Below the pieces are notes generated by a model that was not told the origin of the DNA, did not search any database, and saw only the letters and a program-made list of their open reading frames with translations. Below are positions 88-15,709 of a DNA stretch of 64,000 nt, in pieces; within the stretch, counting starts at the first letter, position 1, and each line of letters starts with the position of its first letter. Location: the IMG/VR virus record IMGVR_UViG_3300046616_000314, positions 372,001-436,000 of that record; one strand, given 5' to 3'. A program made the translations under genes and the position numbers.

Positions 88-354
88 TTATAGCCATTTC
101 AATTTGAACAATGTCGCGTCATCTTCAGATTGGAATTCAATACTGTAGCTATTGATAGTTTTGTCTTCGGGGTCTTCATCAGACCAATTAAGGTGCGTGG
201 TGATCTTGATGTCATATCCCAGGTTGTCGAGACACCATTCACAAACTTCTTTGCCATGGATAGCAGGACGATAGTCGCGACCAATATAGCTCCATTCACA
301 GAGTAAGGTGTAGCCCTTCTCTTTGGTCAAATGCAATCGCGAAGTCATAGCCAT
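88..354 (-). CDS. FKLKW-family paralog, array member 1
   Basis: Ends IEFQSEDDATLFKLKWL; has EWCLDN core. Confidence 0.88.
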   Translation of the reverse strand: MAMTSRLHLTKEKGYTLLCEWSYIGRDYRPAIHGKEVCEWCLDNLGYDIKITTHLNWSDEDPEDKTINSYSIEFQSEDDATLFKLKWL

Positions 355-665
355 TTCATCTTGAACATCAGTAGATCGGCTGCGGTCTTGAATTTCAAAG
401 AATAGTAATGGGTGGCGTCCGAATGTTTGGGAGCTTTGTGACGCAGAAATAGCGGAACAAGTTCTAGATTTTGATCACACCATTCTTCAATATTTGCGGC
501 TAGTCTATAGCTATTGCACAAACGGTTGCCGACCATGCGAAAAACAAAATAGTCTCGCCAGTTCGCGCTTGGAACATCGATGGTAATTTTGTTTCGCACT
601 GATATTGGCACCTTGATTACGTGCTTCAGGTCTGATGCGCGAAGGTTTCTGGGATACTCAGTCAT
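345..665 (-). CDS. FKLKW-family paralog, member 2
   Basis: Ends LKFKTAADLLMFKMKWL; EWCDQN core. Confidence 0.88.
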   Translation of the reverse strand: MTEYPRNLRASDLKHVIKVPISVRNKITIDVPSANWRDYFVFRMVGNRLCNSYRLAANIEEWCDQNLELVPLFLRHKAPKHSDATHYYSLKFKTAADLLMFKMKWL

Positions 666-937
666 AGAAATTTCAACTTGAACTGGACCAATTGTTCGTC
701 AGTGGAATCAGGCAAACAAATCAGCCATTCGTTACCAATCATTCCGCTATTACACGTGATGTACGGAAGGGGATCGAACCCGGCGATCTTACACCATTCG
801 ATTTCATCTGGCTTGGTGATGTTGTACTCAAGTTCTTTCCCCTTCAGAACCGAGACACCATAGGGCGACCACGTTGCGAAACGAGTGAGCAACTGAGTAA
901 TGTCGATGTCGATATAGCGATCTTGTTTCATAGCCAC
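662..937 (-). CDS. FKLKW-family paralog, member 3
   Basis: Ends TDEQLVQFKLKFL; EWCKIA core. Confidence 0.88.
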   Translation of the reverse strand: MAMKQDRYIDIDITQLLTRFATWSPYGVSVLKGKELEYNITKPDEIEWCKIAGFDPLPYITCNSGMIGNEWLICLPDSTDEQLVQFKLKFL

Positions 938-1185
938 TTCAACTTGAACAGGGTCGCATCTTCTTCAGATCGAAATACCAGCTTGAGTTTTCCTACGTCT
1001 GGTTGATCAGCTTCTTGAATCCGGGGCGTAGCAATCTTGTTTTCAACACACCATTTTTTGATAGGAGGTACCCAACGGTATATGAAATATGGATTCCCCT
1101 CACTGGGATGATAATCAGGATTATGCTCTGAAAGGGTCAGAGGAATCAATGCGATATATTGACAAACGAGTGCAGTCATAGCCAC
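928..1185 (-). CDS. FKLKW-family paralog, member 4
   Basis: Ends LVFRSEEDATLFKLKWL; KWCVEN core. Confidence 0.88.
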   Translation of the reverse strand: MAMTALVCQYIALIPLTLSEHNPDYHPSEGNPYFIYRWVPPIKKWCVENKIATPRIQEADQPDVGKLKLVFRSEEDATLFKLKWL

Positions 1186-1400
1186 TTCATCTTGAACATC
1201 AACGCGGTTTCTTCGTCATCGAACACCAGTCGGAATTCTTCGTCGTCCCAGGACAGAGCGGGCATGGTAATCTTGTTGGTGGCGCACCATGACGCGACTT
1301 GCGGTCTCCAATTACACACATAGTTACCGTCTTGTGGGTAAGCGTCGATAACCAATTTAAATATCTGCATTTGTGGATAAAGATATTCAGTCATAGCCAC
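1176..1400 (-). CDS. FKLKW-family paralog, member 5
   Basis: Ends LVFDDEETALMFKMKWL; SWCATN core. Confidence 0.88.
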   Translation of the reverse strand: MAMTEYLYPQMQIFKLVIDAYPQDGNYVCNWRPQVASWCATNKITMPALSWDDEEFRLVFDDEETALMFKMKWL

Positions 1401-1615
1401 TTCAGCTTGAATAACGTTGCGTCTTCATCGTTGCGATATCCTATCCGAAACTCTTGATCGTCTATTATGCTTTGGCGCAAGTATGGGATGATGATATCGT
1501 TGGCGATACACCACTTACTGACAGCCTCGTGCCAATACCACATGCCTGAAGGTCTATTACAGCGGCATAGGTCTTTCAGTTGCGTGTATGTGTAGTAGAT
1601 GAGGATCATCGCCAT
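1391..1615 (-). CDS. FKLKW-family paralog, member 6
   Basis: Ends YRNDEDATLFKLKWL; KWCIAN core. Confidence 0.88.
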   Translation of the reverse strand: MAMILIYYTYTQLKDLCRCNRPSGMWYWHEAVSKWCIANDIIIPYLRQSIIDDQEFRIGYRNDEDATLFKLKWL

Positions 1616-1836
1616 TTCAGTTTGAAGAGTGCCGCTTCTTCTTCGGTGTCGATAAACATATCATGAACCCAATCTGTAATATAGCCCACACGACTATAAA
1701 TTGGACAAGAATCTATATTATATACTATGCGATTATCGAAGCACCATTTCTCCATTTCGGGAAGCAACTCCCATTCATTCCAATCAAATTGGGTGACTTC
1801 GCGGTCGTATAGACTGATACGGGTACGGACCATCAC
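1606..1836 (-). CDS. FKLKW-family paralog, member 7
   Basis: Ends IDTEEEAALFKLKWR; KWCFDN core. Confidence 0.88.
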   Translation of the reverse strand: MMVRTRISLYDREVTQFDWNEWELLPEMEKWCFDNRIVYNIDSCPIYSRVGYITDWVHDMFIDTEEEAALFKLKWR

Positions 1837-1994
1837 ACACCGGGTATGTGTCTAGAGTGATATTCCCGTTGATAATCGCTACACTGATCAAAATAGCCCG
1901 TCATGCAGATGGGACATTCGGGTTGATAATGTTCCTCTTCTTGCGAAGACCCTTGCCACCAATTCCAGATAGCCTTGAGAATTTTCATAGCCAT
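1833..1994 (-). CDS. 53-aa non-family passenger gene with a CPIC motif (MAMKILKAIWNWWQGSSQEEEHYQPECPICMTGYFDQCSDYQREYHSRHIPGV)
   Basis: Translated by hand (below the ORF-track cutoff); starts in the standard junction of member 8 and its TGA overlaps the start of member 7. Confidence 0.75.
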   Translation of the reverse strand: MAMKILKAIWNWWQGSSQEEEHYQPECPICMTGYFDQCSDYQREYHSRHIPGV

Positions 1995-2245
1995 TTGAAC
2001 CTAAACATCACGGCATCTTCGGGAGATTTGAACAGATAGCCGATATGTCTCGATGGGTGAGCCGCATTAGTGAACTCAGGGAAATATCCTAGACTATCCA
2101 CGCACCATTCATAGATGGTTTCTTCAAACGCTATGTATGCATCGGGACCGGCTGTCTTGTTATTACTATGCCACGTCAATAGGTCGCGGATGCCTTCAAA
2201 GACAACATGACAATCAATGATTTCGAAATTATAGGTCATAGCCAC
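1985..2245 (-). CDS. FKLKW-family paralog, member 8
   Basis: Ends LFKSPEDAVMFRFKWL; EWCVDS core. Confidence 0.88.
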   Translation of the reverse strand: MAMTYNFEIIDCHVVFEGIRDLLTWHSNNKTAGPDAYIAFEETIYEWCVDSLGYFPEFTNAAHPSRHIGYLFKSPEDAVMFRFKWL

Positions 2246-2517
2246 TTCAGCTTGAATAGCATCGCAGTCTCTTCGTCACATTCCAGATGGACATAACCAA
2301 TAACGGTTTCCGGCTGTGGATGATCCGCAAGCGCGCCCGTGATAAAGAATTCTTCTATAATAAAGAGAATGGGTGCATTGCCGATGCCGTTCTTTTTGCA
2401 CCATCGTATTTGGGATAAATTCTGTAAAACATAGCCACGATCTACCGTATCCCAAAGATATTCGGAACAGCGTTCAAGACCAAAGATTTCGTAATAGGTC
2501 ATCGGAAGTTTCGTCAT
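2236..2517 (-). CDS. FKLKW-family paralog, member 9
   Basis: Ends CDEETAMLFKLKWL; RWCKKN core. Confidence 0.88.
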   Translation of the reverse strand: MTKLPMTYYEIFGLERCSEYLWDTVDRGYVLQNLSQIRWCKKNGIGNAPILFIIEEFFITGALADHPQPETVIGYVHLECDEETAMLFKLKWL

Positions 2518-2777
2518 AGGAACTTCATCTTAAACATCATCGCAACTTCCATGTCGTTGGTACCTATATAGACATAGGCGACAAAATTATCCCTTCGGTA
2601 CATTTCTGTATCAACGATCAACTCCGGTGGTCCTATGATGCCATTCTTATAGCACCATTCCAACTGACCCTGGTTGCGCAAAGCATACCCGGATATTGTG
2701 TTCTCCCAAAGCCAGTCTTCGAATTTACGGGATACAAAAACTTCATCATATGTTACGGCTATTTTGATCATAGCCAT
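2514..2777 (-). CDS. FKLKW-family paralog, member 10 (sister of 9)
   Basis: Ends DMEVAMMFKMKFL; EWCYKNG core. Confidence 0.88.
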   Translation of the reverse strand: MAMIKIAVTYDEVFVSRKFEDWLWENTISGYALRNQGQLEWCYKNGIIGPPELIVDTEMYRRDNFVAYVYIGTNDMEVAMMFKMKFL

Positions 2778-3025
2778 TTCATCTTGAACAAAATGAAGTC
2801 TTCTTCAGTCCCGCCAGGGAACACCAATATCCATTCACCGGTTGGTATCGAATGCAAATGAGGACGGGCGATTTTATGCTCTCTAAACCAATTCAATTCG
2901 GGATGACGCACGGGCGCGAATGGTCGATCACCTGTTCGCCCATGGCGAGGCGCCATATGATCGCGCTCCCAATGCCCGATCTTATCCATGACAACTTCGT
3001 GGGGGATTGGAAAATCCATCAACAA
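2768..3025 (-). CDS. FKLKW-family paralog, member 11
   Basis: Ends TEEDFILFKMKWL. Confidence 0.88.
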   Translation of the reverse strand: MLMDFPIPHEVVMDKIGHWERDHMAPRHGRTGDRPFAPVRHPELNWFREHKIARPHLHSIPTGEWILVFPGGTEEDFILFKMKWL

Positions 3026-3252
3026 AACTTCAGTTTAAAAGCGATAGCTTGTTCTTCGGTGCAATCCAACGTTATGCTCCAAATCGAGGTTTGCATATCG
3101 CAGGTAGCCAATATCGTATCAAAAATTTCGTTCTTCGTACACCATTGTTTGATGTCGGCTCTGTCGATGATATAGGCTGTCAAATTATCATTCCAGTAAT
3201 ACACACCGCGCAGAACATCATTGGTGTGTTGAACATGAATATTCATAGCCAT
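3019..3252 (-). CDS. FKLKW-family paralog, member 12
   Basis: Ends CTEEQAIAFKLKFC; QWCTKN core. Confidence 0.88.
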   Translation of the reverse strand: MAMNIHVQHTNDVLRGVYYWNDNLTAYIIDRADIKQWCTKNEIFDTILATCDMQTSIWSITLDCTEEQAIAFKLKFC

Positions 3253-3518
3253 TTAATTCGCAACAACAGCAGTTGATCTTCGGTTGCATCTTCCCAGAAT
3301 AAAACCCAAGAATCGGGGTCCGAACGTAGATAAAACAAACACGGTATCGTGGGTGGTCCTTGTAGCTTACACCATTCAAGAATGTCGTCATCATTCAACG
3401 GATAGGCGGTGCGAGCATCAGGAAACAAACTTTGAACATACGTGGTAGTATCGTCATTCCGATACCAACCACGCCCCATATTGGCGACCTGATGATGGGT
3501 AAAATTTGCTATAGCCAT
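3243..3518 (-). CDS. FKLKW-family paralog, member 13
   Basis: Ends ATEDQLLLLRIKWL; EWCKLQ core. Confidence 0.85.
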   Translation of the reverse strand: MAIANFTHHQVANMGRGWYRNDDTTTYVQSLFPDARTAYPLNDDDILEWCKLQGPPTIPCLFYLRSDPDSWVLFWEDATEDQLLLLRIKWL

Positions 3519-3760
3519 TTCAGTTTGAACACCGTTGCTTGTTCATCGTCATAGAATCTCAAGAAATATCGAATACGATATTTTACACCACCTTTGATAG
3601 GACAGGGTGTTAAAAATTCTTGCTCGCGATCAATGTCAGGAATGACAATAGTATTTTTCACACACCATGTGTTGATAGCCCGGCTTAAAGTCGTCGTGGT
3701 GTTATTGCCATGAGTCAGCATCATGAGTTTATAGAATGAAACCTCTATTCTCACATCCAT
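3509..3760 (-). CDS. FKLKW-family paralog, member 14
   Basis: Ends LRFYDDEQATVFKLKWL; TWCVKN core. Confidence 0.88.
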   Translation of the reverse strand: MDVRIEVSFYKLMMLTHGNNTTTTLSRAINTWCVKNTIVIPDIDREQEFLTPCPIKGGVKYRIRYFLRFYDDEQATVFKLKWL

Positions 3761-4014
3761 TTGAGTTTAAACGCCGTAGCGTCTTCCTCTGTCTCGAATG
3801 ATGCGAAGTATCTGCGATTGGTTACGGACCAATTAGGCTCAAGCATGACAAGCGGAGGCTTGGACAGATTTAATGCACACCATGCCTCAATATGAGGATG
3901 AAATTCGGTTCGCAGTCTAAGCGGATGCCCCGACATCTGGCTATTGATCAGATTTCGATACTCAGGCGTTGGATAAGGATAGGTGTGACAATCGACCATT
4001 ATACTTACAGCCAT
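3751..4014 (-). CDS. FKLKW-family paralog, member 15
   Basis: Ends SFETEEDATAFKLKWM; AWCALN core. Confidence 0.88.
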   Translation of the reverse strand: MAVSIMVDCHTYPYPTPEYRNLINSQMSGHPLRLRTEFHPHIEAWCALNLSKPPLVMLEPNWSVTNRRYFASFETEEDATAFKLKWM

Positions 4015-4268
4015 TTGAGACTAAACGCCAAAGCGTCTTCCCCACTGGCAAATGTGCCGTAGAAATTGATCATGTATGATCTAGAATCTTGGCTATTATC
4101 CCACACGGTTTCGACTTCGGGCAATGCCGAAATATGTTCTTTGCACCATTCTTCAACGGGTCGTATGAGACCTCGCGCGGGAGCCGTTACAGTGGTTCTT
4201 ACAACCCCAGTGTATTTGAAGCCATCTTCGGGGTAATGGGTATCGATAAGAATTCTCATGATGCCCAT
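4005..4268 (-). CDS. FKLKW-family paralog, member 16
   Basis: Ends TFASGEDALAFSLKWL; EWCKEH core. Confidence 0.88.
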   Translation of the reverse strand: MGIMRILIDTHYPEDGFKYTGVVRTTVTAPARGLIRPVEEWCKEHISALPEVETVWDNSQDSRSYMINFYGTFASGEDALAFSLKWL

Positions 4269-4534
4269 TTCAGTTTGAATAGAGTGGCGTCTTCTTCATT
4301 TTTAAAACAACTGACTACTTGATCGTCACGACTGACTTTCGTTAAATTTCCAGCCATAATATAAAACGTCGGCGGAATATAACCCAAGTTCGCATGACAC
4401 CATTTGTCATACGCGGAGCCATAGTTTTCGGTATGACCTTCGGGATAGCGGTCGCGCCAAGTGGCATACCATCCTTCGGTCTCATAGAATGCATCTATGG
4501 AGAATTCACATTCGTATGGAAAATCTATAGCCAT
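4256..4534 (-). CDS. FKLKW-family paralog, member 17
   Basis: Ends CFKNEEDATLFKLKWAS; KWCHAN core. Confidence 0.88.
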   Translation of the reverse strand: MAIDFPYECEFSIDAFYETEGWYATWRDRYPEGHTENYGSAYDKWCHANLGYIPPTFYIMAGNLTKVSRDDQVVSCFKNEEDATLFKLKWAS

Positions 4535-4800
4535 TTGAGCTTGAACGAAATCATTTCTTCTTCAGAATAAAATGTTAGCACGAACGCAGGCGAATTAACA
4601 TATTCTTCATTCGAGAGGTTGTTCCGACGTGGATGGAATGATGACAACGGAGGATGCGAAAGATATTTCAGACACCAGTGTTTGATGTCTGGTCGCAGTA
4701 TCAAATTTCCACCGGCAAGTTCATACGCCAGAGAGTCTTTGTCCCACAAAGCCAAGGACTCTTTGACCGTGATAGTAATGGTGCTCATGATCATAACCAC
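4525..4800 (-). CDS. FKLKW-family paralog, member 18
   Basis: Ends LTFYSEEEMISFKLKWL; HWCLKY core. Confidence 0.88.
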   Translation of the reverse strand: MVMIMSTITITVKESLALWDKDSLAYELAGGNLILRPDIKHWCLKYLSHPPLSSFHPRRNNLSNEEYVNSPAFVLTFYSEEEMISFKLKWL

Positions 4801-5060
4801 TTCAATTTGAAAGCCAGGGCGTCTTCGTCGTGTTCGAAATGAAGTCTAACTTTCCACTTTAATTTTCCAGATGATAGAGCATCACCATCAGGGCGTTCCA
4901 GGCATTCAACATACGGGAATTTTTGTAACGCCTTTTCACACCACTGGCGTACAATATACACTAGAATCCAATCATCACGCATGGTGGGAATTACCAACTG
5001 GAATGGCGTTCGGTTGACGATTCCAGACCCGTATTCGTATTCAATAACCATTACAGCCAC
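4791..5060 (-). CDS. FKLKW-family paralog, member 19
   Basis: Ends LHFEHDEDALAFKLKWL; QWCEKA core. Confidence 0.88.
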   Translation of the reverse strand: MAVMVIEYEYGSGIVNRTPFQLVIPTMRDDWILVYIVRQWCEKALQKFPYVECLERPDGDALSSGKLKWKVRLHFEHDEDALAFKLKWL

Positions 5061-5320
5061 TTCAATTTGAAGACTAGGGCATCTTCATCGGATACGAAAT
5101 CTATAGAGTATTCCCATTGCCCAAAACGAGAACCAACGAAATCCACAACAGGTAGAGCAATGGCGTTATCTTCACACCATTGAGCGACTTCGGGCGAGAG
5201 TGTCATATCATCGACAAGCCGATCACCCGACAGCACGTTCAATTTAATGACCGGCTTATAATCCGCTGACAGGATATCCCCGATGCCTACGAGATAGGTA
5301 ATCGTTGTCATGTCAGCCAC
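5051..5320 (-). CDS. FKLKW-family paralog, member 20
   Basis: Ends IDFVSDEDALVFKLKWL; QWCEDN core. Confidence 0.88.
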   Translation of the reverse strand: MADMTTITYLVGIGDILSADYKPVIKLNVLSGDRLVDDMTLSPEVAQWCEDNAIALPVVDFVGSRFGQWEYSIDFVSDEDALVFKLKWL

Positions 5321-5544
5321 TTCAATGCGAATACGGTCGCATCTTCATCTGATTTGAATTCAAGATAGAACGTATCGTCACCACCGAATCTTCCGGCGTA
5401 TTCCACTTTGGGAAGCATGGACAGATGTTTGTGACACCAGTGTCGTGCATCGTCGGTAAGCATCCACTTGCCGCCGAAACGATCAACGAGCCATTTTACC
5501 ATTGCTGGTTTTGGCAAAATGTATTCGAGAACGATCATAGCCAT
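5308..5544 (-). CDS. FKLKW-family paralog, member 21
   Basis: Ends LEFKSDEDATVFALKWLT; start placed at the junction MAM (track gives 5565). Confidence 0.85.
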   Translation of the reverse strand: MAMIVLEYILPKPAMVKWLVDRFGGKWMLTDDARHWCHKHLSMLPKVEYAGRFGGDDTFYLEFKSDEDATVFALKWLT

Positions 5545-5795
5545 TTCAACTTGAACGCGGTACAATCTTCGTCTGTTTCAAATCTAAGTTCAACAACCCA
5601 CGATTCTGGTTTGATGAACTTTAATTGTTCCGCGCGAGGAATTGCAGATAGATGCTTAGCCGCCCAATCTTTTGCTTTCGGCATTAATTCCCATACCATG
5701 GGATTACCACTGGTGTCCGATGGACTAACGAGACCGTCGTACTGAAGACTTATCAATTGATCAAATGTTAAAGTTAGAAGAATGTTCATAGCCAT
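5535..5795 (-). CDS. FKLKW-family paralog, member 22
   Basis: Ends LRFETDEDCTAFKLKWL. Confidence 0.88.
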   Translation of the reverse strand: MAMNILLTLTFDQLISLQYDGLVSPSDTSGNPMVWELMPKAKDWAAKHLSAIPRAEQLKFIKPESWVVELRFETDEDCTAFKLKWL

Positions 5796-6031
5796 TTCAA
5801 CTTAAAAAGTACGGCGTTCTCTTCGGTATTGAAATACGCAATGTAATGCGTTCCTGCCGAAAATTCAGGACGATACGAACGAAGATCAACGAGACCTTCC
5901 TTTCTCCATTCAACCACCGGGTCTCGATCTTGCGCATTAATGAGGCTGCTTCCGAAGGCTTTTTGAATCTTCGGAGGTTGGTCGTTTCTAATGGAGCGTA
6001 CCCAAGATACCTGAAATGGAGTCATAGCCAC
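5786..6031 (-). CDS. FKLKW-family paralog, member 23 (QPPKIQ subfamily)
   Basis: Ends AYFNTEENAVLFKLKWL. Confidence 0.88.
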   Translation of the reverse strand: MAMTPFQVSWVRSIRNDQPPKIQKAFGSSLINAQDRDPVVEWRKEGLVDLRSYRPEFSAGTHYIAYFNTEENAVLFKLKWL

Positions 6032-6261
6032 TTCATCCGAAATAGCAGGGCGTTCTCTTCAGTATCGAAATAGGCGGTATACTCTCTACCATTGGAGCCA
6101 TGCAGCCCGGCGGATATAGTGATAAGACCCTGCCATTCGTCCTTGGGTTCACGTGTGCGCGCAATATCAGTCGAAATGATCGTGCTACCGAAGACTGCTT
6201 GAATCTTCGGAGGTTGTTGGTTTGAACTCGTGCGCCGCCACTTTACCGGGATCATAACCAT
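6022..6261 (-). CDS. FKLKW-family paralog, member 24 (QPPKIQ subfamily)
   Basis: Ends AYFDTEENALLFRMKWL. Confidence 0.88.
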   Translation of the reverse strand: MVMIPVKWRRTSSNQQPPKIQAVFGSTIISTDIARTREPKDEWQGLITISAGLHGSNGREYTAYFDTEENALLFRMKWL

Positions 6262-6533
6262 TTCATCCGAAATAGGAGAGCGTCGTCTTCAGATTCAAAT
6301 CTAAAATATACCCAAGCGCGATGATCATTACCCGCGATTTTAACGGGTGACGATGCTCCGCGTTCTTTGAACGCTTGATACTGAAGAGATACAATCACAC
6401 CCGTAGCATCGCACCATTTCTGCACGGGTGGATCAAACATCACCGTCCATTGACCAAAACCGGTGAATGACACAAGGTTTTGTTTTCTGAAGTCTTGATA
6501 GAATTCAGTAATACATGCACCAGTCATAACCAC
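6252..6533 (-). CDS. FKLKW-family paralog, member 25
   Basis: Ends FRFESEDDALLFRMKWL; KWCDAT core. Confidence 0.88.
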   Translation of the reverse strand: MVMTGACITEFYQDFRKQNLVSFTGFGQWTVMFDPPVQKWCDATGVIVSLQYQAFKERGASSPVKIAGNDHRAWVYFRFESEDDALLFRMKWL

Positions 6534-7332: not shown

Positions 7333-7338
7333 GCGCCC

Positions 7339-8113: not shown

Positions 8114-8343
8114 TTCATCTTAAAGAGTAGGGCGTCGTCTTCGTTATCGAAATACAAAACGTAATCGCGAGAACGCGAGCCCTTTTCAAAAGCAAGGACT
8201 ATTTCAAATTCTGGCGCCTTGGTTAGATGCTTGGCGTTCCACTCTTCGACTTCGGCGCAGAATTGCCATGTCGTACCGCTATAGCGAACGAGGTATTTGT
8301 CGAACTGATTAAGGGTGCAAAAGACTTCAGTCAGCATTACCAT
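8104..8343 (-). CDS. FKLKW-family paralog, member 31
   Basis: Ends LYFDNEDDALLFKMKWL; start refined to MVMLTEV. Confidence 0.85.
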   Translation of the reverse strand: MVMLTEVFCTLNQFDKYLVRYSGTTWQFCAEVEEWNAKHLTKAPEFEIVLAFEKGSRSRDYVLYFDNEDDALLFKMKWL

Positions 8344-8573
8344 TCCAGGGCGGATGAGCCCCATTTCATTTTGAAGGTAACGGCATCTTCTTCACGATAG
8401 AAACAGATGTCGAAGGTCGTCCACCCCATCTTCTCGATTTTGAATTCTTTGATTTCGGCATTGCGAAACCATTCCCGAATCTCTTCACGAAATTCAGGAA
8501 GCCCATGCCGGATGGGATACTTGAACAAAAATTGTGTATCGGTGTTGACCGGGACTCGTGTGATCTCAACCAT
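8337..8573 (-). CDS. FKLKW-family paralog, member 32
   Basis: CFYREEDAVTFKMKWG plus a short tail. Confidence 0.88.
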   Translation of the reverse strand: MVEITRVPVNTDTQFLFKYPIRHGLPEFREEIREWFRNAEIKEFKIEKMGWTTFDICFYREEDAVTFKMKWGSSALEW

Positions 8574-8820
8574 TGGTATGCCATTTCAATTCGTAAAGAA
8601 CCATGTCTTCATCCGTGGCGAACGTGACATCGATCCACGTTTGGGATCGCTGCTTAGGACGCTGACCGCTATTCGCCCAGTTAAGTCGTTGCATGGCGGT
8701 CAACGGAATCAATTCGGAAACAGCCTCAAAGAGTGGTGATTCGGACAAATGATCCCGGCACCATTCCCGAACTTCATCCCAGGTTTCCACGGGGGTCCGA
8801 AATGTTCTAATCTTAGTCAT
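8566..8820 (-). CDS. FKLKW-family paralog, member 33
   Basis: TFATDEDMVLYELKWHTNG; EWCRDH core. Confidence 0.88.
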   Translation of the reverse strand: MTKIRTFRTPVETWDEVREWCRDHLSESPLFEAVSELIPLTAMQRLNWANSGQRPKQRSQTWIDVTFATDEDMVLYELKWHTNG

Positions 8821-8821
8821 C

Positions 8822-9031
8822 TTAGCCCCATTTCAATTTGAATAGTGTTTGGTCTTCAATATTATGAATAACGATATACGTCACCATAGTCCATCGACCA
8901 TCGCGGCGAACATAATCTGGCATCATACACCAATTACCAGAGAGACACCGATGGCACCAATCGCCACATGCGTTGTAGACCGCATGGGAAATTTCGAACT
9001 TGTCGTCGGTCCAATCTCCAACTTGGATCAT
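8822..9031 (-). CDS. FKLKW-family paralog, member 34
   Basis: Ends HNIEDQTLFKLKWG; DWCHRC core. Confidence 0.88.
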   Translation of the reverse strand: MIQVGDWTDDKFEISHAVYNACGDWCHRCLSGNWCMMPDYVRRDGRWTMVTYIVIHNIEDQTLFKLKWG

Positions 9032-9246
9032 CCGAATTTCATCTTGAACAACATGGCATCTTCGTCACTGTCGAAAATGACATAATACGCTCTATATTTT
9101 CCGGTGGGACCAAGCACGAGATCATCATAAAAATACGACCGCTTCAGATTTTGTTTTGTCCAATACCTAGACGCCCAAAAGGTCGCTTGGGTGATTTCAT
9201 AGCGATTGGCGAAATGTCCGTTGCTTAGTTTCATGCCCCGCACCAC
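9028..9246 (-). CDS. FKLKW-family paralog, member 35
   Basis: Ends VIFDSDEDAMLFKMKFG. Confidence 0.85.
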   Translation of the reverse strand: MVRGMKLSNGHFANRYEITQATFWASRYWTKQNLKRSYFYDDLVLGPTGKYRAYYVIFDSDEDAMLFKMKFG

Positions 9247-9728
9247 TTTATTTTGTATTTCGCGGCTTCGATTTCATCAACGAAATCGATATGCAGTTCG
9301 ACCATTTCGGGTTGATTGGGAACCACATTCGTTCGTTTGATATGGTAGCCCTTCTTGACTTCTTTTTTACACCATTCGCGAACGTGTTCAGGAAAACGCC
9401 AATCCGTATCAATGTATTTCTTTACATCGAAATTATGGCAAGTAATCACCAAGGTATGATACTTGATGAATGCTTCTTTGAATTCGTTCGCGTGTTCACG
9501 GGTCTTGAATGTTATTTCGTAATGGGCGAGCACCGTGCGTTTTTTATCCGACACTAGGTTATGATCGACCGTGGTACTTGTGCGAAGAGTACAGGGATAA
9601 CCCGAATTGGCGATCCAATCGCGAACAGCCGGAAGCAACTCGCCCTTTTTGTTGAAGAAGAACGCTTCATGCAAAATATAATCAACGACATAACGATTGC
9701 CGTGAAAATTTACGCAGATTCTATGCAT
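9231..9728 (-). CDS. FKLKW-family double-domain paralog, member 36 (165 aa)
   Basis: Internal ITFKTREHANEF plus terminal IDFVDEIEAAKYKIKWCGA. Confidence 0.88.
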   Translation of the reverse strand: MHRICVNFHGNRYVVDYILHEAFFFNKKGELLPAVRDWIANSGYPCTLRTSTTVDHNLVSDKKRTVLAHYEITFKTREHANEFKEAFIKYHTLVITCHNFDVKKYIDTDWRFPEHVREWCKKEVKKGYHIKRTNVVPNQPEMVELHIDFVDEIEAAKYKIKWCGA

Positions 9729-10011
9729 TATGCCATTTCAGTTTGAACATGACCATTTCGTCTTCTTTTTCGAAACAGACACAGATATATCCAGGGTACG
9801 AACCGTTCGTACCATATGCGACAATTTCGTATTTTGCCAGGATATTTTCGTCAAACCACGCTTGGGTCTCGGGGTTCAGGCGCAATTGATAGGGATCGAC
9901 CATTTCGTGCAATTGTTCGCGCGACACACCGATTGTAATCTCGTACGGTAATCGTTGTTGAGCCGATCTCATCCGTTGATCGCTCATCGTTCTAGAAGAT
10001 GCCACTTTCAT
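9721..10011 (-). CDS. FKLKW-family paralog, member 37
   Basis: Ends VCFEKEDEMVMFKLKWHNA. Confidence 0.88.
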   Translation of the reverse strand: MKVASSRTMSDQRMRSAQQRLPYEITIGVSREQLHEMVDPYQLRLNPETQAWFDENILAKYEIVAYGTNGSYPGYICVCFEKEDEMVMFKLKWHNA

Positions 10012-10012
10012 A

Positions 10013-10291
10013 CTAGCCCCATTTCAGTTTGAAGATGGTGGCGTGGTCCTCACGATCAAATTCGATAATAAGATAAGATGGGGTGTCATCTGGTGAACGG
10101 CTAAGCATGTCAGCCGAAAAGGCGCCATAACCTTTCATCAAATAGGCATGACTCTCAATCCCGTTGGCACGCATCCATTCACCGATGGCTCCCGTGAATT
10201 TAAATCCTCCGACAGCATACATCATGTCACGAGTCATCGCGTTGATAATCGAGGCGGGTTGATGGAGTGTGACGCGATGAGCTTTGCGCAT
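10013..10291 (-). CDS. FKLKW-family paralog, member 38
   Basis: Ends IEFDREDHATIFKLKWG. Confidence 0.88.
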   Translation of the reverse strand: MRKAHRVTLHQPASIINAMTRDMMYAVGGFKFTGAIGEWMRANGIESHAYLMKGYGAFSADMLSRSPDDTPSYLIIEFDREDHATIFKLKWG

Positions 10292-10597
10292 TTAGAGCCA
10301 CTTCATCTTGAACATCAGAAATTTTTCATCATCATCAAACGGACGCTCGAAACGCAAGATGAGAGAAAACGGAACCGGTGTTGGAGACGCCATATCAAGT
10401 GCTGGCTTAGGAATACCGTTGTCAGCGCACCATTGAGCAACTTCATCACGAACTTGAACCAAGTCCTCATGACGCAATGCCAAACCACTACTGGTGGTCT
10501 TCAACATTACGAGCATCCGAAGTGCGGGAATCCAATCTTCGGGACCTATGGCTTTTGCACGGTCTTCCGTTATAACGATTTCCATCATCAGAGCCAC
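10292..10597 (-). CDS. FKLKW-family paralog, member 39
   Basis: Ends DDEKFLMFKMKWL; QWCADN core. Confidence 0.88.
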   Translation of the reverse strand: MALMMEIVITEDRAKAIGPEDWIPALRMLVMLKTTSSGLALRHEDLVQVRDEVAQWCADNGIPKPALDMASPTPVPFSLILRFERPFDDDEKFLMFKMKWL

Positions 10598-10836
10598 TTC
10601 ATTTTGAACATCAGGGCATTCTCATCGGATTGGAAAGTTAGTTCGTACATAGTTCTAACCCCAGATGGGTTTTCCAGTATGATACGCGATTTAATAATCC
10701 GAGGTAGTTCAATATCATTTTCTGCACACCATGCCCATACGTCATCGGACAATCCGACGTAATGATAGGGCGTACCTTTTACGCTCTGCCATTTCAGCAA
10801 GTGTTCGGACCAAGATATTGAGAGCTTGTTATGCAT
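10588..10836 (-). CDS. FKLKW-family paralog, member 40
   Basis: Ends LTFQSDENALMFKMKWL; AWCAEN core. Confidence 0.88.
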   Translation of the reverse strand: MHNKLSISWSEHLLKWQSVKGTPYHYVGLSDDVWAWCAENDIELPRIIKSRIILENPSGVRTMYELTFQSDENALMFKMKWL

Positions 10837-10880: not shown

Positions 10881-11027
10881 ATGGCTCTATTATTTGCAGT
10901 TCTGGTTCTTGCTGGCTTTGGTTTTTGGTGGTTGGCGACTTGGCCCGTCGCATACGCCGAGCGTATTGCTAAGGGTTTATTCTTTTTCGCAGCCCTTGTG
11001 TGGTTCTTTACTAAGGTAACGATTTAA
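10881..11027 (+). CDS. 48-aa two-helix membrane protein inserted antisense inside the array (MALLFAVLVLAGFGFWWLATWPVAYAERIAKGLFFFAALVWFFTKVTI)
   Basis: Translated by hand; AGGAGA Shine-Dalgarno 5 nt upstream; two hydrophobic segments; followed by a hairpin. Confidence 0.8.
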   Translation: MALLFAVLVLAGFGFWWLATWPVAYAERIAKGLFFFAALVWFFTKVTI

Positions 11028-11034
11028 TAATACT

Positions 11035-11072
11035 ATCGTCGTTCTCTTTCAATCCAGACGGAGAACGACGAT
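11035..11072. terminator. Hairpin ATCGTCGTTCTC-N14-GAGAACGACGAT between convergent genes
   Basis: 12-bp perfect inverted repeat. Confidence 0.65.
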
Positions 11073-11329
11073 CACAACCATTTCATCTTAAACATTAGAG
11101 CATCTTCGTCTGATTTGAAATGTAATAAAATATCCGTCCAATGGGCTGATCCGCCGTTGGGTTCGACGCGGCATCGCCCGATCATTTTAATTTTTGGCAG
11201 GGTTATGTGTTTCTCACACCATGGGCGGATATCATCAGCGATGAACGGTGTGCTAAGAGCTTTGAATCTCTTGTAGCAAAACCATTGGATCACATGATGA
11301 TTTGAATGCACCGTTATAATCATTGCCAT
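11072..11329 (-). CDS. FKLKW-family paralog, member 41
   Basis: Ends LHFKSDEDALMFKMKWL; start refined to the junction MAM. Confidence 0.85.
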   Translation of the reverse strand: MAMIITVHSNHHVIQWFCYKRFKALSTPFIADDIRPWCEKHITLPKIKMIGRCRVEPNGGSAHWTDILLHFKSDEDALMFKMKWL

Positions 11330-11589
11330 TTCAACTTGAATAGAGTCGCGTCTTCTTCTGATTTGAAGAACACTTCGCATATCATATGATCTGACCTTCG
11401 GTTCTTTATAAAAGCACAATCAACACTTACGTAACGATCTGCGCGTCTAAATTTGGGGAATTCCATCCCCTGTTCTTCCATCCAAGCTTCAACGTTGGGA
11501 TGCCATTTGGCTTGGTCCGCAACCGAAGTCTTCTCCGGTGTGAACAGGAAAATATGCGAATACCAAATAACGTCTGTCTTCATTGCCAT
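11320..11589 (-). CDS. FKLKW-family paralog, member 42
   Basis: Ends VFFKSEEDATLFKLKWQ. Confidence 0.88.
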   Translation of the reverse strand: MAMKTDVIWYSHIFLFTPEKTSVADQAKWHPNVEAWMEEQGMEFPKFRRADRYVSVDCAFIKNRRSDHMICEVFFKSEEDATLFKLKWQ

Positions 11590-11855
11590 TTCAATTTAAA
11601 CAAAGCGGCATCTTCTTCGGATGCGAAGAATAGTTCATAGACAGCATGATTAGCCGCCTTACCATCCCTACCAGTAAGGGTTCGGATACGAGGCGAGCGT
11701 TTTATGAATGGAACGAACATTTCATTCGTTTTACACCATGCCAATGCTTCATCGGTAAGCTGTACTCTGAAATTCGAATCGTCGGCTTTACTACGGGTCC
11801 ATTCGAAAATTTCGTTGGTCCAATAGATATCGGTTTGCCAGAATTCAGCTTTCAC
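11580..11855 (-). CDS. FKLKW-family paralog, member 43 (sister of 42)
   Basis: Ends LFFASEEDAALFKLKWQ; GTG start at 11855 overlaps the stop of the upstream passenger gene. Confidence 0.8.
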   Translation of the reverse strand: MKAEFWQTDIYWTNEIFEWTRSKADDSNFRVQLTDEALAWCKTNEMFVPFIKRSPRIRTLTGRDGKAANHAVYELFFASEEDAALFKLKWQ

Positions 11856-12045
11856 TAGGCGAGGCGTCCTTGCCGATCCGAGCCTTGCCAGCCTGAACTT
11901 TCTTGCGTCCAGCTTGCGATAAGGCACCTTCGAATGTTTCGAAGCGTGACGGGACTTTCGCATTGGGATGTTGCCAGATGATCCACGAACCATCGGCTTG
12001 TTTCAGTTCAATGCGCCAGAGGCGTTCAACTTGATCGGTCATCAT
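11845..12045 (-). CDS. 66-aa non-family passenger gene
   Basis: Fills the gap between members 44 and 43; protein-like sequence (LWRIELKQADGSWIIW...FETFEGALSQA). Confidence 0.6.
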   Translation of the reverse strand: MMTDQVERLWRIELKQADGSWIIWQHPNAKVPSRFETFEGALSQAGRKKVQAGKARIGKDASPSES

Positions 12046-12075
12046 CGTTCTCGAAACGTGGCTGATTCCGATATT

Positions 12076-12393
12076 TTACATCCATTTCAGCTTGAATGCA
12101 ACGGCGGCATCTTCACTGTCGAATTCAACTACGTATTCTACGTCAATGAAGCCTCCATCATCGACTTCAACCCGTCTAGCAAAACCCTTGGTGGCGCCAT
12201 CCGAAGTAAATGCTTCCATAACTTCGGAACGAAAATTCCAATAACCATTGGCGAGTGTCCCTTGACACAATGACATTCCAAATTCTTGAATGCGACCGGG
12301 GTGGGTATAACGAGCGGCGGACAGCACGCGATTCAAGCCCAGTGGATCAATAAACGAGCGACGGAACCATGAAACGCGATATGTCATAGCCAC
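12076..12393 (-). CDS. FKLKW-family paralog, member 44
   Basis: Ends VEFDSEDAAVAFKLKWM. Confidence 0.88.
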   Translation of the reverse strand: MAMTYRVSWFRRSFIDPLGLNRVLSAARYTHPGRIQEFGMSLCQGTLANGYWNFRSEVMEAFTSDGATKGFARRVEVDDGGFIDVEYVVEFDSEDAAVAFKLKWM

Positions 12394-12662
12394 TTCAACT
12401 TGAATGCAACCATGTCTTCTTCAGTCTCAAAATCGACATCGTATCTTGCAAAATTTTGACCGGGGACACCAAGGCTTGCACGCATGGCAATTGCGCCGTC
12501 CATTTTGAATAGTTCTAAGACAACGGGACGAATCATCCATTCATCGCCAACGTCTTTACCCTTTGGGGATAAGCAAAGGGTATCTCCGAAGTATTCATAA
12601 ATTCGTTGTGGTTGATGGTCGCGAACGGCTCGAAACCATGTAAGTGTATGTGTCATAACCAT
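12384..12662 (-). CDS. FKLKW-family paralog, member 45
   Basis: Ends VDFETEEDMVAFKLKWL. Confidence 0.88.
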   Translation of the reverse strand: MVMTHTLTWFRAVRDHQPQRIYEYFGDTLCLSPKGKDVGDEWMIRPVVLELFKMDGAIAMRASLGVPGQNFARYDVDFETEEDMVAFKLKWL

Positions 12663-12910
12663 TTCAGCTTAAATGCTACAGCGTCTTCATCGCACGCAAA
12701 ATCAAGTGTTATCGCGATAACACTTCGATCATTATTTGCCCAAGCTGCATGAATAAACTTTATTTCTTTGAAATTAATATTCTTGAACGCCCATGTCTTA
12801 AAATCGTCAGACCATATAGGATTATGTCTCCCCGCGCCGTCTGTATCCAACCGGACGTAGATTTCTAGGACTTTGGGGTATGGAATATAAAATATGCTTG
12901 TCATAGCCAT
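12653..12910 (-). CDS. FKLKW-family paralog, member 46
   Basis: Ends LDFACDEDAVAFKLKWL. Confidence 0.88.
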   Translation of the reverse strand: MAMTSIFYIPYPKVLEIYVRLDTDGAGRHNPIWSDDFKTWAFKNINFKEIKFIHAAWANNDRSVIAITLDFACDEDAVAFKLKWL

Positions 12911-13423
12911 TTCAACTTAAATGCAACCATGTCCTCTGGGGTAACAAAACACATATCCATTTCCGTAGTCTTCATACTATTATCGTTGAAGAATGCGGGC
13001 GGCGTGAGTTTGTGTTCTTCACACCATGCGACCATAGCAAGGCTGAGTTGTAGATACGATCCACCATGCCACATTATGGGATCGTATTTCCCCTTAGTTT
13101 GATATCGAACGGTGGCGCGAATTTTATTTTCTTCGATAAAACGTTTCGCTAGTTCAACACTATCAAATGTGAAGTCACATGAATATCGACTTTCTAGTAA
13201 ACTTATCCTGTCTGGTGTGGTGATCGTATTCGGAGAACGCGACAGATCGCCATCGCAAAGACGTTTCGTTTTGATAACACCAGAACCGGCAGAGGTTCGT
13301 TATCTCGACTTCAGAGGGCGCACGGAAATGTGGGCGATAGATCAGACGCGCTTCTTCACGGGGTTTCTTGATTGTCCCCACACGGCGCCGAAAATTGTTT
13401 GCGAAAATTCCGATCATAGCCAT
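12901..13423 (-). pseudogene. FKLKW-family double-domain member 47, split by a +1 frameshift near 13175-13195
   Basis: Frame A (13423-13175) holds the RFWCYQN core; the +1 frame is open 13299-12901 and reads YSCDFTFDSVELAKRF...AWCEEH...CFVTPEDMVAFKLKWL; fused product about 173 aa. Confidence 0.75.
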
Positions 13424-13674
13424 TTCAGCCTAAAGAGTGTCGCGGCTTCCGTTGAAGTGAATATGAGACGCCAGTGAGGTTTCTTATCCAGGGATCGGAA
13501 GGCTTCGGTAACGTGCAATGCCGGGTGGTTGATACTATTTTTCATGCACCAAACTTTGACGGCGTAATTCATTGCGTAGTGGCTACCACCGAGACAATGG
13601 TATTCGCCGTGTCTATTCAATAACACGATCTTATCGACTTGATCGGGTGTTATCTCAAAGCTCACGTAAGCCAC
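13414..13674 (-). CDS. FKLKW-family paralog, member 48
   Basis: Ends LIFTSTEAATLFRLKWL; VWCMKN core. Confidence 0.88.
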   Translation of the reverse strand: MAYVSFEITPDQVDKIVLLNRHGEYHCLGGSHYAMNYAVKVWCMKNSINHPALHVTEAFRSLDKKPHWRLIFTSTEAATLFRLKWL

Positions 13675-13675
13675 G

Positions 13676-13984
13676 TCACAACCATTTCAATTTGAAAGCG
13701 ACTAGATCATCCTCGGTCTTGAAACCAATGAACCAATGATAACGTTCGCCATTCGGATAGGGCACACCGCCTCCATGGTGTGACAACAGAGGTTCTACCA
13801 TATTTTGGTCGGAACACCATGCTATAATATCGTCGCGAATTCGTTCGCAGACCAAACCGATGCGTTGACGACAGCCATTCTCATCTTGCCAAGCTATATC
13901 ATCCCACTTCCAATAACTCACGGGATGATTGAAACGAGAATCAACTTCAGTCAATTCTTCGCCAGAATAAAATTTCAAAACCAT
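13676..13984 (-). CDS. FKLKW-family paralog, member 49
   Basis: Ends IGFKTEDDLVAFKLKWL; AWCSDQN core. Confidence 0.88.
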   Translation of the reverse strand: MVLKFYSGEELTEVDSRFNHPVSYWKWDDIAWQDENGCRQRIGLVCERIRDDIIAWCSDQNMVEPLLSHHGGGVPYPNGERYHWFIGFKTEDDLVAFKLKWL

Positions 13985-14202
13985 TTCAATTTGAAAAGAG
14001 TTGCATGAGTTTCATCCGCAAATTCGAATCCATAATGACCTAAGTAATTCACCGAGTTAGGATTTATGTCATTGATCTTAAGCCATTGTGCAAATGGTTC
14101 AGCCCATGTGTAATTATAAGACGGCGGCTCGTAATGGAAAATATCATTCAAATTAAGAGAATAACTAGCGGCGACTTTATACGTATTGTTCGTCAAAACC
14201 AT
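13975..14202 (-). CDS. FKLKW-family paralog, member 50
   Basis: Ends FEFADETHATLFKLKWF. Confidence 0.88.
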   Translation of the reverse strand: MVLTNNTYKVAASYSLNLNDIFHYEPPSYNYTWAEPFAQWLKINDINPNSVNYLGHYGFEFADETHATLFKLKWF

Positions 14203-14480
14203 TTCAGTTTAAAAAGGGTTGCTGCGGTTTCTGATGGGAAGTCCAGCGTCATCCATGATGGACAACCATCCGAATGTCTTTTTTCAATATCGAGCATTCC
14301 ACAAGACTGAAAAAACACGTTGGACGAATCAAGGTTATTGAATCTGAACCACTCGACTACATGATCTGCCCAAATAGGCACAAATACCCCAGGATCGGTT
14401 TCTTGAATCCCACGGTACAGTTTGCGCATATTCGCTAGGTCAAGATAGCCGGTGATTCTATACACTGGTTGGTTCAGCAA
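14193..14480 (-). CDS. FKLKW-family paralog, member 51 (first transcribed; sister of 50)
   Basis: Ends LDFPSETAATLFKLKWF. Confidence 0.88.
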   Translation of the reverse strand: MLNQPVYRITGYLDLANMRKLYRGIQETDPGVFVPIWADHVVEWFRFNNLDSSNVFFQSCGMLDIEKRHSDGCPSWMTLDFPSETAATLFKLKWF

Positions 14481-15708: not shown

Positions 15709-15709
15709 A

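Follow-up and report, generated by a model that had tools for sequence, protein, structure and literature searches.

Tandem arrays of more than 30 similar small genes are known from the jumbo phages 121Q and G (Hua et al. 2017, PMC5646251), and small-gene tandem arrays have also been noted for phAPEC6 (PMC7247149). In the 121Q-like phage PBECO4, an array of at least 28 small genes was located in the 150 kb that were scanned of its 348 kb. The DNA analyzed here, referred to as the window, is a stretch of 64,000 nucleotides (positions 372,001 to 436,000 of IMG/VR record IMGVR_UViG_3300046616_000314). The source genome is closed, about 561 kb long, and belongs to a jumbo myovirus whose distant relatives include Atu_ph07, Phosso and jumbo phages of the RaK2-like type. 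PBECO4 and 121Q are likewise jumbo myoviruses of the wider RaK2-like assemblage.

The array at 88-14480 of the window and that of PBECO4 are built alike. Both consist of tens of head-to-tail, same-strand genes of 50-90 residues, all annotated as hypothetical, whose products combine a variable N-terminal part with a conserved C-terminal motif. However, the motif of the PBECO4 proteins (LGTNYQExYVxxYIxxL) is unlike that of the present family, and the two families are not homologous (hhalign probability 0.15%). A profile HMM built from the 51 members of the present array found no match at E≤1 inside the PBECO4 array; a lone match outside it had E = 0.1. An initial sequence-only reading of the window had put the array forward as its best candidate for an undescribed system. 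The array is not unique: the family occurs in many other phages and arrays of the same style, although not homologous, are present in PBECO4/121Q.

Anatomy of the array

The ORF listing, a motif scan and the chaining of start codons gave exactly 51 family genes in 88-14480, all on the minus strand and head-to-tail, the number counted in the sequence-only reading. The genes are 57-185 codons long (median 86). The impression of almost no intergenic space was also borne out: the genes occupy 94.1% of the interval, and at 45 of the 50 junctions the next start lies between -10 and +2 of the preceding stop (10-nt overlap, n = 18; 4-nt overlap, n = 15; 12 more between -8 and +2). The genes end in the codons AA(A/G)-TGG-CTA-TGA, within which the ATG or GTG of the next gene is usually contained. 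A Shine-Dalgarno core was found for 1 of the 51 family genes and for 4 of the 26 other ORFs checked. Coupled translation of the array is supported by the sequence.

Segment A (11072..14480, minus strand), transcribed from 14480 to 11072, contains 11 family genes with HMM E-values of 1e-12 to 1e-19, and the starts within it overlap the preceding stops. Segment B (88..10836, minus strand), delineated by ORFs, start chaining and the HMM, contains 40 family genes and runs beyond window position 1. The continuation past the window edge that had been anticipated was found in locus L060, where six further minus-strand members were identified by the HMM and three degenerate ones by eye; a convergent plus-strand array lies beyond them.

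The view of the array as one polycistronic unit had to be given up. Between the segments, at 10836-11072, the array is interrupted by a strong hairpin and an opposite-strand membrane ORF. The stem-loop (11035..11072, minus strand) begins in the stop codon with which segment A ends and has a 12-bp stem, an energy of -21.2 kcal/mol and a z-score of -4.3 relative to shuffled sequences. It is likely a bidirectional terminator or processing site; its T-run is weak, for which reason it was missed by a simple terminator scan. The ORF (10881..11027, plus strand) encodes a hydrophobic protein of 48 residues with two predicted membrane helices, and the AGGAG located 7 nt before its ATG is among the few strong Shine-Dalgarno sites of the window. 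Three small ORFs gave no HMM match: one of 53 residues with a CPIC motif, embedded and coupled in the array (1833..1994, minus strand), and those at 11845-12045 and 14458-14640. Among the listed ORFs of the array, none stood out as an HTH gene. Moreover, the ORF listing and HMM showed that a two-domain member (12901..13423, minus strand) is broken by a frameshift. The ORF at 13175-13423 retains the first WCxxN helix (HMM E = 0.62), and in the other frame (12901-13299) an intact second domain is preceded by a degenerate first C-terminal module. Given the hairpin with its opposite-strand ORF, the three non-family ORFs and the broken member, the array is therefore not one uninterrupted polycistron or operon and comprises at least two blocks in the window.

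Two family modules are fused in a member of 185 residues (6775..7332, minus strand; ORF listing and two-module analysis) and in another of 165 residues (9231..9728, minus strand), in which the profile search matched two stretches. Similar fusions are present in other phages. The possibility was considered that the members use their shared core to co-assemble as a mixed oligomer or scaffold, associated with the virion or inside the cell, with coupled translation setting the ratios. Stoichiometric coupling across tens of genes and the repeated fusion of two modules in one chain would suit such an assembly. However, the AlphaFold model of the 165-residue protein has no confident inter-domain packing (pLDDT 67, pTM 0.47), smaller phages keep a single copy, and the arrays are located alongside genes for replication and repair instead of in the structural module at 37-64 kb of the window. 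A mixed oligomer is considered improbable.

One small fold

The C-termini of the 51 array genes fit [ST][ED][ED]DAxxFK[LM]KW[L]. The conserved WCxxN/H helix, proline and C-terminal motif described initially are evident from the counts: the W is conserved in 50 of the 51 members, the following C in 33, the N/H in 34, the loop Pro in 35 of 45, the strand F in 43 of 51 and the last K in all 51. AlphaFold predicted a small domain of β-α-α-β-β-α order (pLDDT 81.7, pTM 0.68), with strands at residues 2-8, 55-62 and 65-72 and helices at 10-14, 40-48 and 75-85. According to this model, a member is arranged as β1-α1-[variable loop]-α2(WCxxN)-Pro loop-β2-β3-α3([ST]EEDAxxFKLKW), the whole chain forming one fold. 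The conserved positions look like those that build the hydrophobic core and cap the helices of a single small domain.

The N-termini had been regarded as completely different, which is too strong: the N-terminal part keeps a β-strand pattern that AlphaFold places in the sheet, and alignment identity among paralogs is about 18% there versus about 26% in the C-terminal part. The α1-α2 connection is the most variable region of the family, and loops, length and surface charge vary among copies (pI 4.1-10.3; net charge -8 to +12, median acidic); Trp makes up 4% of residues. The suggested constant scaffold with a diversified surface is correct as to the surface, but a constant module joined to unrelated N-termini overstates the case.

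No membrane segment was found in any member, and no catalytic-type set of conserved polar residues emerged from the conservation across the 51 array members. The varied synonymous codons at conserved residues and the confidently predicted fold support a genuine protein-coding family. That its members are small, soluble, single-domain proteins restricted to phages, and that the family has undergone a very large, lineage-specific expansion in the source genome, is well supported.

In agreement with the initial failure to recognize a characterized family, Pfam, NCBIfam and PADLOC scans of all 51 members and a PHROGs v4 scan of 10 members returned no match above threshold. The curated-family scans gave only scattered single matches, all mutually different, at E≥0.001. 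A PDB sequence search and Foldseek gave no significant match (Foldseek E≥0.3, TM 0.34-0.45), the weak top Foldseek matches including PCBP KH1 and ribosomal uL23. These matches, and the secondary-structure order and similar size that the AlphaFold model shares with type I KH domains, which are nucleic-acid binders, would fit a domain that binds nucleic acid or serves nucleic-acid enzymes, as a small DNA- or RNA-binding regulator or a nuclease accessory subunit or inhibitor, with copies specialized for different sequences or enzymes. However, the matches are insignificant, the GXXG loop is absent, the α1-α2 connection is the part that varies most, and the wide charge range with its acidic median is unlike that of a uniform nucleic-acid binder. 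From the secondary-structure order, a nucleic-acid target may still be compatible with the domain. A type I KH domain proper was rejected, as there is neither a GXXG loop nor a conserved Gly pair and the best KH matches had E 0.5-1.2 and TM 0.34-0.45.

Other known systems were also compared. The secondary-structure order of YefM-type (Phd/YefM) antitoxins matches that of the present family. However, neither the PDB sequence matches nor the 50 top-ranked Foldseek PDB matches listed contained such a chain, and there is no adjacent toxin gene, the array neighbors being further family members. Targets of a diversity-generating retroelement were rejected because positions 1-15000 contain no near-identical repeat pair and the variation is spread over the whole gene; the DNA repeats there comprise only the 40-60 nt C-terminal module, at 60-80% identity. 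Arrays of polymorphic-toxin immunity genes (SUKH/Imm) were rejected because no Pfam immunity family matched and all members found were in phage contexts.

Age and distribution of the copies

The array paralogs have a mean identity of about 24% and a maximum of 49%, and neighboring genes resemble each other slightly more than random pairs do (0.27 vs. 0.237, p<2e-4). At the conserved sites, F, K, L, K and A are encoded by mixed synonymous codons. Judged from their sequences, the paralogs are ancient and not the product of a recent accordion-type amplification. An origin of the copies in old tandem duplications is well supported; occasionally, neighbors fused to give two-domain proteins, and decay was rare.

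For phages G and 121Q, arrays of more than 30 similar genes have been read as largely redundant duplicates, extra DNA after capsid enlargement (a capsid-size ratchet), with little individual function (Hua et al. 2017, PMC5646251). The slight adjacency effect fits tandem duplication, and the lower GC content of the array (44.3% vs. 49.6% in core genes) also favors this explanation. However, neutral copies at this identity would be riddled with stop codons, whereas just one of the 52 copies is broken and the other 51 are intact. Furthermore, the same core residues and start-stop overlaps are kept across copies, synonymous sites are randomized while amino acids are kept, and orthologues elsewhere have dN/dS of 0.1-0.3. 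Redundancy is very doubtful as an explanation of the present array.

Beyond the array, the HMM identified 14 further members in the window at E<1e-3 and one borderline. The earlier tally of about 16 further members, some 67 copies and about 30% of the window holds, all members together making up 28.4%. Four to five divergent members (17144..18773, plus strand; E 1e-4 to 1e-7, one borderline at 0.068) start a divergent plus-strand operon. An isolated member lies at 26386..26778 (plus strand, E = 8e-8) and a cluster of six at 29456..31467 (plus strand; motif scan and HMM, E 3e-6 to 1.5e-12). The motif scan and HMM also located members at 32159-32461 and 32682-33053 (plus strand) and at 33506-33748 (minus strand). 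Genome-wide, at least about 130 members, a lower bound, are distributed over several loci on both strands.

The HMM matched 445 representative proteins at E≤1e-3. When 185,579 species genomes were scanned with a strict pattern, one member was confirmed, on a 2.7-kb contig. All contexts in which the family was found were those of phages, many in number and including a cultured one. Among the closest structural-gene relatives, the strict pattern matched 2 proteins in a 415-kb contig, as compared with about 31 in the source genome, and none in contigs of 457, 517 and 578 kb. Sinorhizobium phage Phosso (PV764938.1), a related huge phage with 39% identity in the baseplate wedge protein, has at least six members in the 40 kb examined, with three strong and further weaker matches. 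These are CDS 499-503 and 514-516, all annotated "hypothetical protein", with HMM E-values of 1e-8 to 4e-3 and C-termini such as DAMLFKLRWL. They share the domain, the tandem order with 4-nt overlaps and the position beside nucleic-acid enzymes (PNK, nucleotidyltransferase and topoisomerase), and differ from the present array in their small number.

In at least eight smaller aquatic phage contigs (IMG/VR L014, L018, L024, L029, L036, L044, L054 and L056), the start of a member overlaps the end of an upstream UvdE endonuclease gene; members in L043, L062 and L240 belong to the same subfamily. This subfamily shares the domain, the C-terminal motif and the start overlap with the upstream gene. 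In contrast to the array members, it is present as one copy per contig, with no expansion seen, and is conserved over its whole length (40-85% identity). When dN/dS was calculated by halves on these single-copy orthologues, the least saturated pairs gave 0.10-0.28, with the N-terminal half conserved as well and purifying selection in both halves. No arms-race signature was seen in these values, and this observation, like the age of the paralogs, runs counter to a role in host takeover.

Directly upstream of the array, on the same strand, are genes annotated as an SbcD-like nuclease (14650-15759) and a C5 cytosine methylase (16146-17072), with a 148-residue ORF between them (within 14650..17072); the strand switches at about 17100. 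In a 154-kb contig, the genes surrounding the member are those for RNA ligase, DEDDh exonuclease and Pol III. The position after SbcD here, beside PNK, RNA ligase, exonuclease and topoisomerase elsewhere, and the overlap with UvdE argue for the nucleic-acid function introduced above. However, any early phage gene is commonly near DNA-metabolism genes, and the UvdE link may be one inherited synteny. A nucleic-acid-directed domain is regarded as unlikely.

Proposed function and comparison with known systems

The copies form long same-strand runs that follow genes for replication and repair, and Shine-Dalgarno sites are almost absent from the genome. Ribosomes would probably reinitiate from gene to gene, giving roughly equimolar output of whole blocks. 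The domain may be a non-enzymatic binding module, and its many diverged copies a repertoire, expressed together, for binding various macromolecules of the host or the phage during takeover; defence proteins of the host and nucleic-acid enzymes would be the likeliest targets. We favor, with a probability of about 40%, the view that the lineage-specific expansion is one of such a module, which would be expressed together with the genes for replication and repair and serve host takeover or counter-defence. An "effector or adaptor library", as proposed in the sequence-only reading, is a plausible candidate. A narrower version, in which the roughly 130 copies act as a co-expressed, broad-spectrum set of small inhibitors or adaptors, each with its own target among the defence effectors of the host or the nucleic-acid enzymes that it would neutralize or redirect, is a tentative proposal and rather unlikely. 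No common partner or hub for the members was identified. The array would be expressed early, to judge only from its neighbors and the relative PA5oct.

In huge phages, unexplained small genes number in the hundreds; here, a single fold accounts for about 6% of the 561-kb genome. This paralog family is, to our knowledge, probably the largest so far described from a phage. It provides a test case for phage genome growth by gene-family expansion and not by acquisition alone. The single-copy gene of smaller phages and the small cluster in cultured Phosso, whose host is Sinorhizobium meliloti, place its function within experimental reach.

The MGF110, 360 and 505 families of ASFV and the ankyrin and Bcl-2-like families of poxviruses consist of diverged paralogs of one small fold arranged in genome blocks, and are believed to influence host range and the defences of the host. 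The proposed repertoire would be analogous to these families of large eukaryotic DNA viruses. If the inhibitor or adaptor repertoire is real, it would be their bacterial-virus counterpart, and no larger gene family for counter-defence or host range would be known from a phage. However, there is no sequence or structural relation, and the hosts of those viruses are eukaryotic. Compared with the family of PBECO4, the present one is much larger, occupies several loci on both strands and also occurs as a conserved single-copy gene in other phages. Among the small-gene arrays known in jumbo phages, the present example is a very large one.

Coupled genes of the array

An ORF listing of window positions 1-15500 showed an unbroken run of genes on the minus strand, their products terminating in [ST][ED][ED]DAxxFK[LM]KW[L]. 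A motif scan combined with the chaining of start codons placed 51 family genes between 88 and 14480, with a median length of 86 residues (range 57-185) and a coverage of 94.1% of that interval. A profile HMM built from the 51 was then applied to the window and found 14 extra members at E<1e-3 and one borderline member outside the array, at 17144-18773, 26386-26778, 29456-31467, 32159-33053 and 33506-33748; family ORFs make up 28.4% of the window. The sequence-only reading had described a tandem array of such genes with further copies elsewhere, and these analyses show that its description and counts were correct. The array also runs past the left window edge, as had been claimed, for about 2.8 kb in the adjoining stretch of the contig (L060), where the members are increasingly degenerate. 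Plus-strand ORFs reading ...HSHFNLN..ASSS... over 88-14480 were rejected as genes, being reverse-complement images of the conserved C-terminal module. Three small minus-strand ORFs within or abutting the array (1833-1994, 11845-12045 and 14458-14640) do not belong to the family; one of them contains a CPIC motif and another is rich in Trp.

The genes are tightly packed. Among the 50 junctions, 18 are 10-nt overlaps, 15 are 4-nt overlaps and 12 lie between -8 and +2, leaving only five longer gaps of 30, 82, 151, 235 and 339 nt. The usual last codons are AA(A/G) TGG CTA TGA, so that the K-W-L-stop of one gene holds the ATG or GTG of the next. A Shine-Dalgarno core was found for 1/51 family genes and for 4/26 other window ORFs checked, and leaders are A/T-rich; the gene starts considered include those of 14650-15759, 20699-22495 and 48168-52901. 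On the basis of this scarcity, start-in-stop reinitiation is probably the main way in which the family genes are translated, and it would give block-wise equimolar expression of the array genes. The scarcity also suggests an SD-independent host, for example among the Bacteroidota or cyanobacteria.

The proposal that the array is one polycistronic unit had to be abandoned, because the array is broken by a hairpin and an opposite-strand ORF. The hairpin (11035-11072; 12-bp stem, -21.2 kcal/mol, z-score -4.3) directly follows the stop codon of the gene that ends at 11072 and adjoins a plus-strand ORF at 10881-11027, which encodes a hydrophobic membrane protein of 48 residues and has a strong AGGAG site. 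Small hydrophobic ORFs of opposite orientation mark array breaks both here and at L060:5411-5737 (+). Promoter and terminator consensus scans gave no enrichment over shuffles. Upstream of the array, the same strand carries a 60-aa ORF, SbcD, a 148-aa ORF and a methylase gene until the coding strand changes near 17100, and the array may be co-regulated with replication and repair genes. The GC content of the array region (1-16000) is 44-45% vs. 47-54% in 16000-64000, its GC skew is negative, in keeping with minus-strand transcription, and its RSCU values correlate with those of the core genes at 0.72.

A small domain in old, largely intact copies

AlphaFold2 modeling based on the alignment of the 51 paralogs gave a confident model (pLDDT 81.7, pTM 0.68). 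The modeled elements are b1 (2-8), a1 (10-14), a variable connection, a2 (40-48, carrying WCxxN), a Pro-containing loop, b2 (55-62), b3 (65-72) and a3 (75-85, EEDAxxFKLKW). The conserved columns comprise W (50/51), C (33/51), N/H (34/51), P and a strand F (43/51), together with an acidic helix cap, F and K-x-K-W. From the pattern of these columns, they look like a hydrophobic core and helix caps rather than a catalytic set, and the domain may have a non-enzymatic binding role.

A constant C-terminal module joined to unrelated N-termini had been proposed. The N-terminal strand, however, retains an alternating hydrophobic pattern, and the chain is better described as a single small domain whose core is well conserved while its loops, length and charge are very variable. 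Array members range in pI from 4.1 to 10.3 and in net charge from -8 to +12, Trp accounts for 4.0% of their residues, and no family member of the array has a membrane segment. Pfam, PHROGs, NCBIfam, PADLOC and PDB sequence searches with the family were all negative. Foldseek gave no significant match in PDB or BFVD (best E 0.06-0.3); the weak matches included uL23 and the PCBP KH1 domain, at TM ~0.4, and uncharacterized proteins of uncultured phages.

Two intact members, at 6775-7332 and 9231-9728 (both minus strand), consist of two fused modules, and such fusions were found in other phages too. When a two-domain member was modeled by AlphaFold to find a dimer interface, the confidence was too low. 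That the family members form a mixed oligomeric assembly is regarded as very unlikely.

Several observations bear on selection and on the age of the copies. Codons are mixed at conserved residues: F is encoded by TTC 30 times and TTT 18 times, K by AAG 23 times and AAA 18 times, the conserved L by TTG, CTG or CTC and the conserved A by all four codons. No long near-identical DNA repeats were found in the array, where repetition at the DNA level is confined to a 40-60 nt 3' module of 60-80% identity. It is therefore the protein that is conserved, and there was no recent amplification. A DGR-like repeat pair was likewise ruled out, as this short 3' module is the only repeat. Pairwise identity between paralogs averages about 24% and reaches at most 49%, which indicates old copies. 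Adjacent genes are slightly closer than random pairs (0.27 vs. 0.237, p<2e-4), consistent with tandem duplication long ago. For three window members with listed clusters, no proteins of 90% identity or more were present in a collection of 15 billion.

The possibility was considered that the copies are near-neutral duplicate "filler". Despite the high divergence, only one broken copy was seen, a two-domain member split by a frameshift (12901-13423, minus strand), and even this break might reflect misassembly or a programmed frameshift instead of decay. The filler explanation is considered improbable, on a par with the mixed assembly.

Occurrence within and beyond the genome

The window spans bases 372001-436000 of the 561,116-bp record IMGVR_UViG_3300046616_000314. 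The first and last 187 bp of this record are 99.5% identical (L023, L231), and a Logan contig from an independent assembly (L285, SRR26076614) joins its end to its start at 99.98-100% identity. The genome is thus closed at about 560.9 kb, as a circle or in circularly permuted form. A 13.6-kb Logan contig, considered as a close strain for orthologue dN/dS, proved to belong to this very genome (99.98-100% identity). Among the other window genes are those for an SbcD-like nuclease, a C5 cytosine methylase, a late sigma factor, tail fibres and the hub and wedge proteins of the baseplate; two giant minus-strand ORFs of 1577 and 2251 residues (48168-52901 and 54089-60844) lie in the structural region, between the tail-fibre and baseplate genes. 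The window contains no Rfam matches or tRNAs. The wedge protein shares 32-39% identity with its counterparts in Phosso, Atu_ph07, GAP32, CBB, PBECO4 and relatives, and 50-56% with those encoded on uncultured contigs of 415-608 kb.

In L060, the array continuation is followed by the small plus-strand membrane ORF and then by a convergent plus-strand array with at least 16 members, plus 4 more in L055, a second stretch of the same genome. With the window array, these make contig positions of about 360.9-386.5 kb almost wholly family genes. Elsewhere on the contig, two divergent runs at 0.6-5.7 kb hold 17 members, clusters at 125 kb and 135 kb have 5 and 4, three two-domain members lie at 270-285 kb, and 548-553 kb contains another 10. 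About 132 members were counted in the ~131 kb of the genome that could be read. Several more representative family proteins map to the contig, so that about 130 members and ~6% of the genome is a lower bound.

Among 1.84 billion proteins, 445 representatives match the family profile at E<=1e-3. The best 150 of these include 45 of the window's own proteins (44 at 100% identity), the remainder coming from the rest of this genome or from other contigs with the same C-terminal motif. A strict DNA pattern for the motif found 62 IMG/VR stretches, with about 31 matches from this genome; other contigs (5-543 kb) had one match each, or two separate stretches in one contig, and HMM scans of these loci found 1-5 members per locus. 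Among the closest structural-gene relatives, a 415-kb contig had two strict-pattern matches and contigs of 457, 517 and 578 kb had none, which argues that the extreme expansion is lineage-specific, assuming that motif and codons are conserved in relatives as here. No family member was found at 79 SbcD loci of relatives (42-50% identity) searched for a syntenic array. Applied to 185,579 species genomes, the strict pattern turned up a single genuine member, whose 2.7-kb contig was binned with a Bacteroidetes MAG (L240). As far as has been seen, the family occurs only in phages.

BLAST lacks the sensitivity needed to detect this family. Megablast of window 1-15000 had no match among GenBank phages, a tblastn search with a window member gave only a weak match in the cultured Sinorhizobium phage Phosso, and tblastn with a Phosso member returned only itself. 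A related-locus search with an alignment subset returned almost only the same genome, and three of the four matches of a word-indexed homologue search were the window's own proteins.

Phosso carries a tandem cluster (CDS 499-503) between nucleotidyltransferase and polynucleotide kinase genes, and three more genes by its topoisomerase genes, 2/3 of which are above the HMM inclusion threshold; all are annotated hypothetical. On a 154-kb contig, one lone copy lies amid genes for RNA ligase, DEDDh exonuclease and Pol III. The explanation that the family binds nucleic acid or serves as a nuclease accessory draws on such neighborhoods and on the weak uL23 and KH1 resemblances, and is considered unlikely, though less so than the filler and mixed-assembly explanations.

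In at least eight smaller aquatic phage contigs (L014, L018, L024, L029, L036, L044, L054 and L056), a single member directly follows the UvdE UV-endonuclease gene and overlaps its end. Genes for a 2OG-Fe(II) oxygenase, a GNAT acetyltransferase and a fatty-acid desaturase occur near this pair. The UvdE-linked orthologues are conserved end to end, including the N-terminal strand WPPPxWTEVV. Their NG86 dN/dS is 0.10-0.28 in both halves for the least saturated pairs, with the N half changing about twice as fast as the C half. The N-terminus is therefore not intrinsically hypervariable, and these results indicate an ancestral gene with a conserved function.

Possible function and comparison with other jumbo-phage arrays

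The family is a real, selected, phage-specific family of small domains with coupled genes and without a known homologue, and its expansion in a single closed huge-phage genome is massive and old. The observation in the sequence-only reading was confirmed, while its interpretation is partly supported. The favored explanation, given a probability of roughly 40%, is that the family may be a diversified repertoire of binders for host takeover or counter-defence. It is favored because the surfaces are intact yet highly diverged, with no catalytic signature, and because the family is phage-only and placed beside nucleases and RNA-repair-type genes. An arms-race version of the binder repertoire is opposed by the purifying selection in single-copy orthologues, by the age of the paralogs and by the fact that no target was identified. 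The remaining probability, beyond the binder repertoire and its three alternatives, goes to other explanations.

The array is notable for its scale and is now tied to a culturable model. For the jumbo phages G and 121Q, arrays of more than 30 similar genes have been described by Hua et al. (PMC5646251), a point repeated in the phAPEC6 paper (PMC7247149). PBECO4, a 121Q-like jumbo phage, also has one: a scan of 1-150 kb (NC_027364.1, L232) found at least 28 minus-strand genes of 52-90 residues at about 111-132 kb. Beside it, in the record at ~97-123 kb, is a second paralog family of ~165 residues with at least 8 members, annotated hypothetical. The PBECO4 array proteins, also annotated hypothetical, have a variable N part and a C-terminal motif, LGTNYQExYVxxYIxxL. 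However, they are not homologous to the present family, as there was no HMM match and the hhalign probability was 0.15%. In view of these precedents, the jumbo-phage small-gene array is a kind of feature already known, and what is new here is a much larger example built from a different domain.
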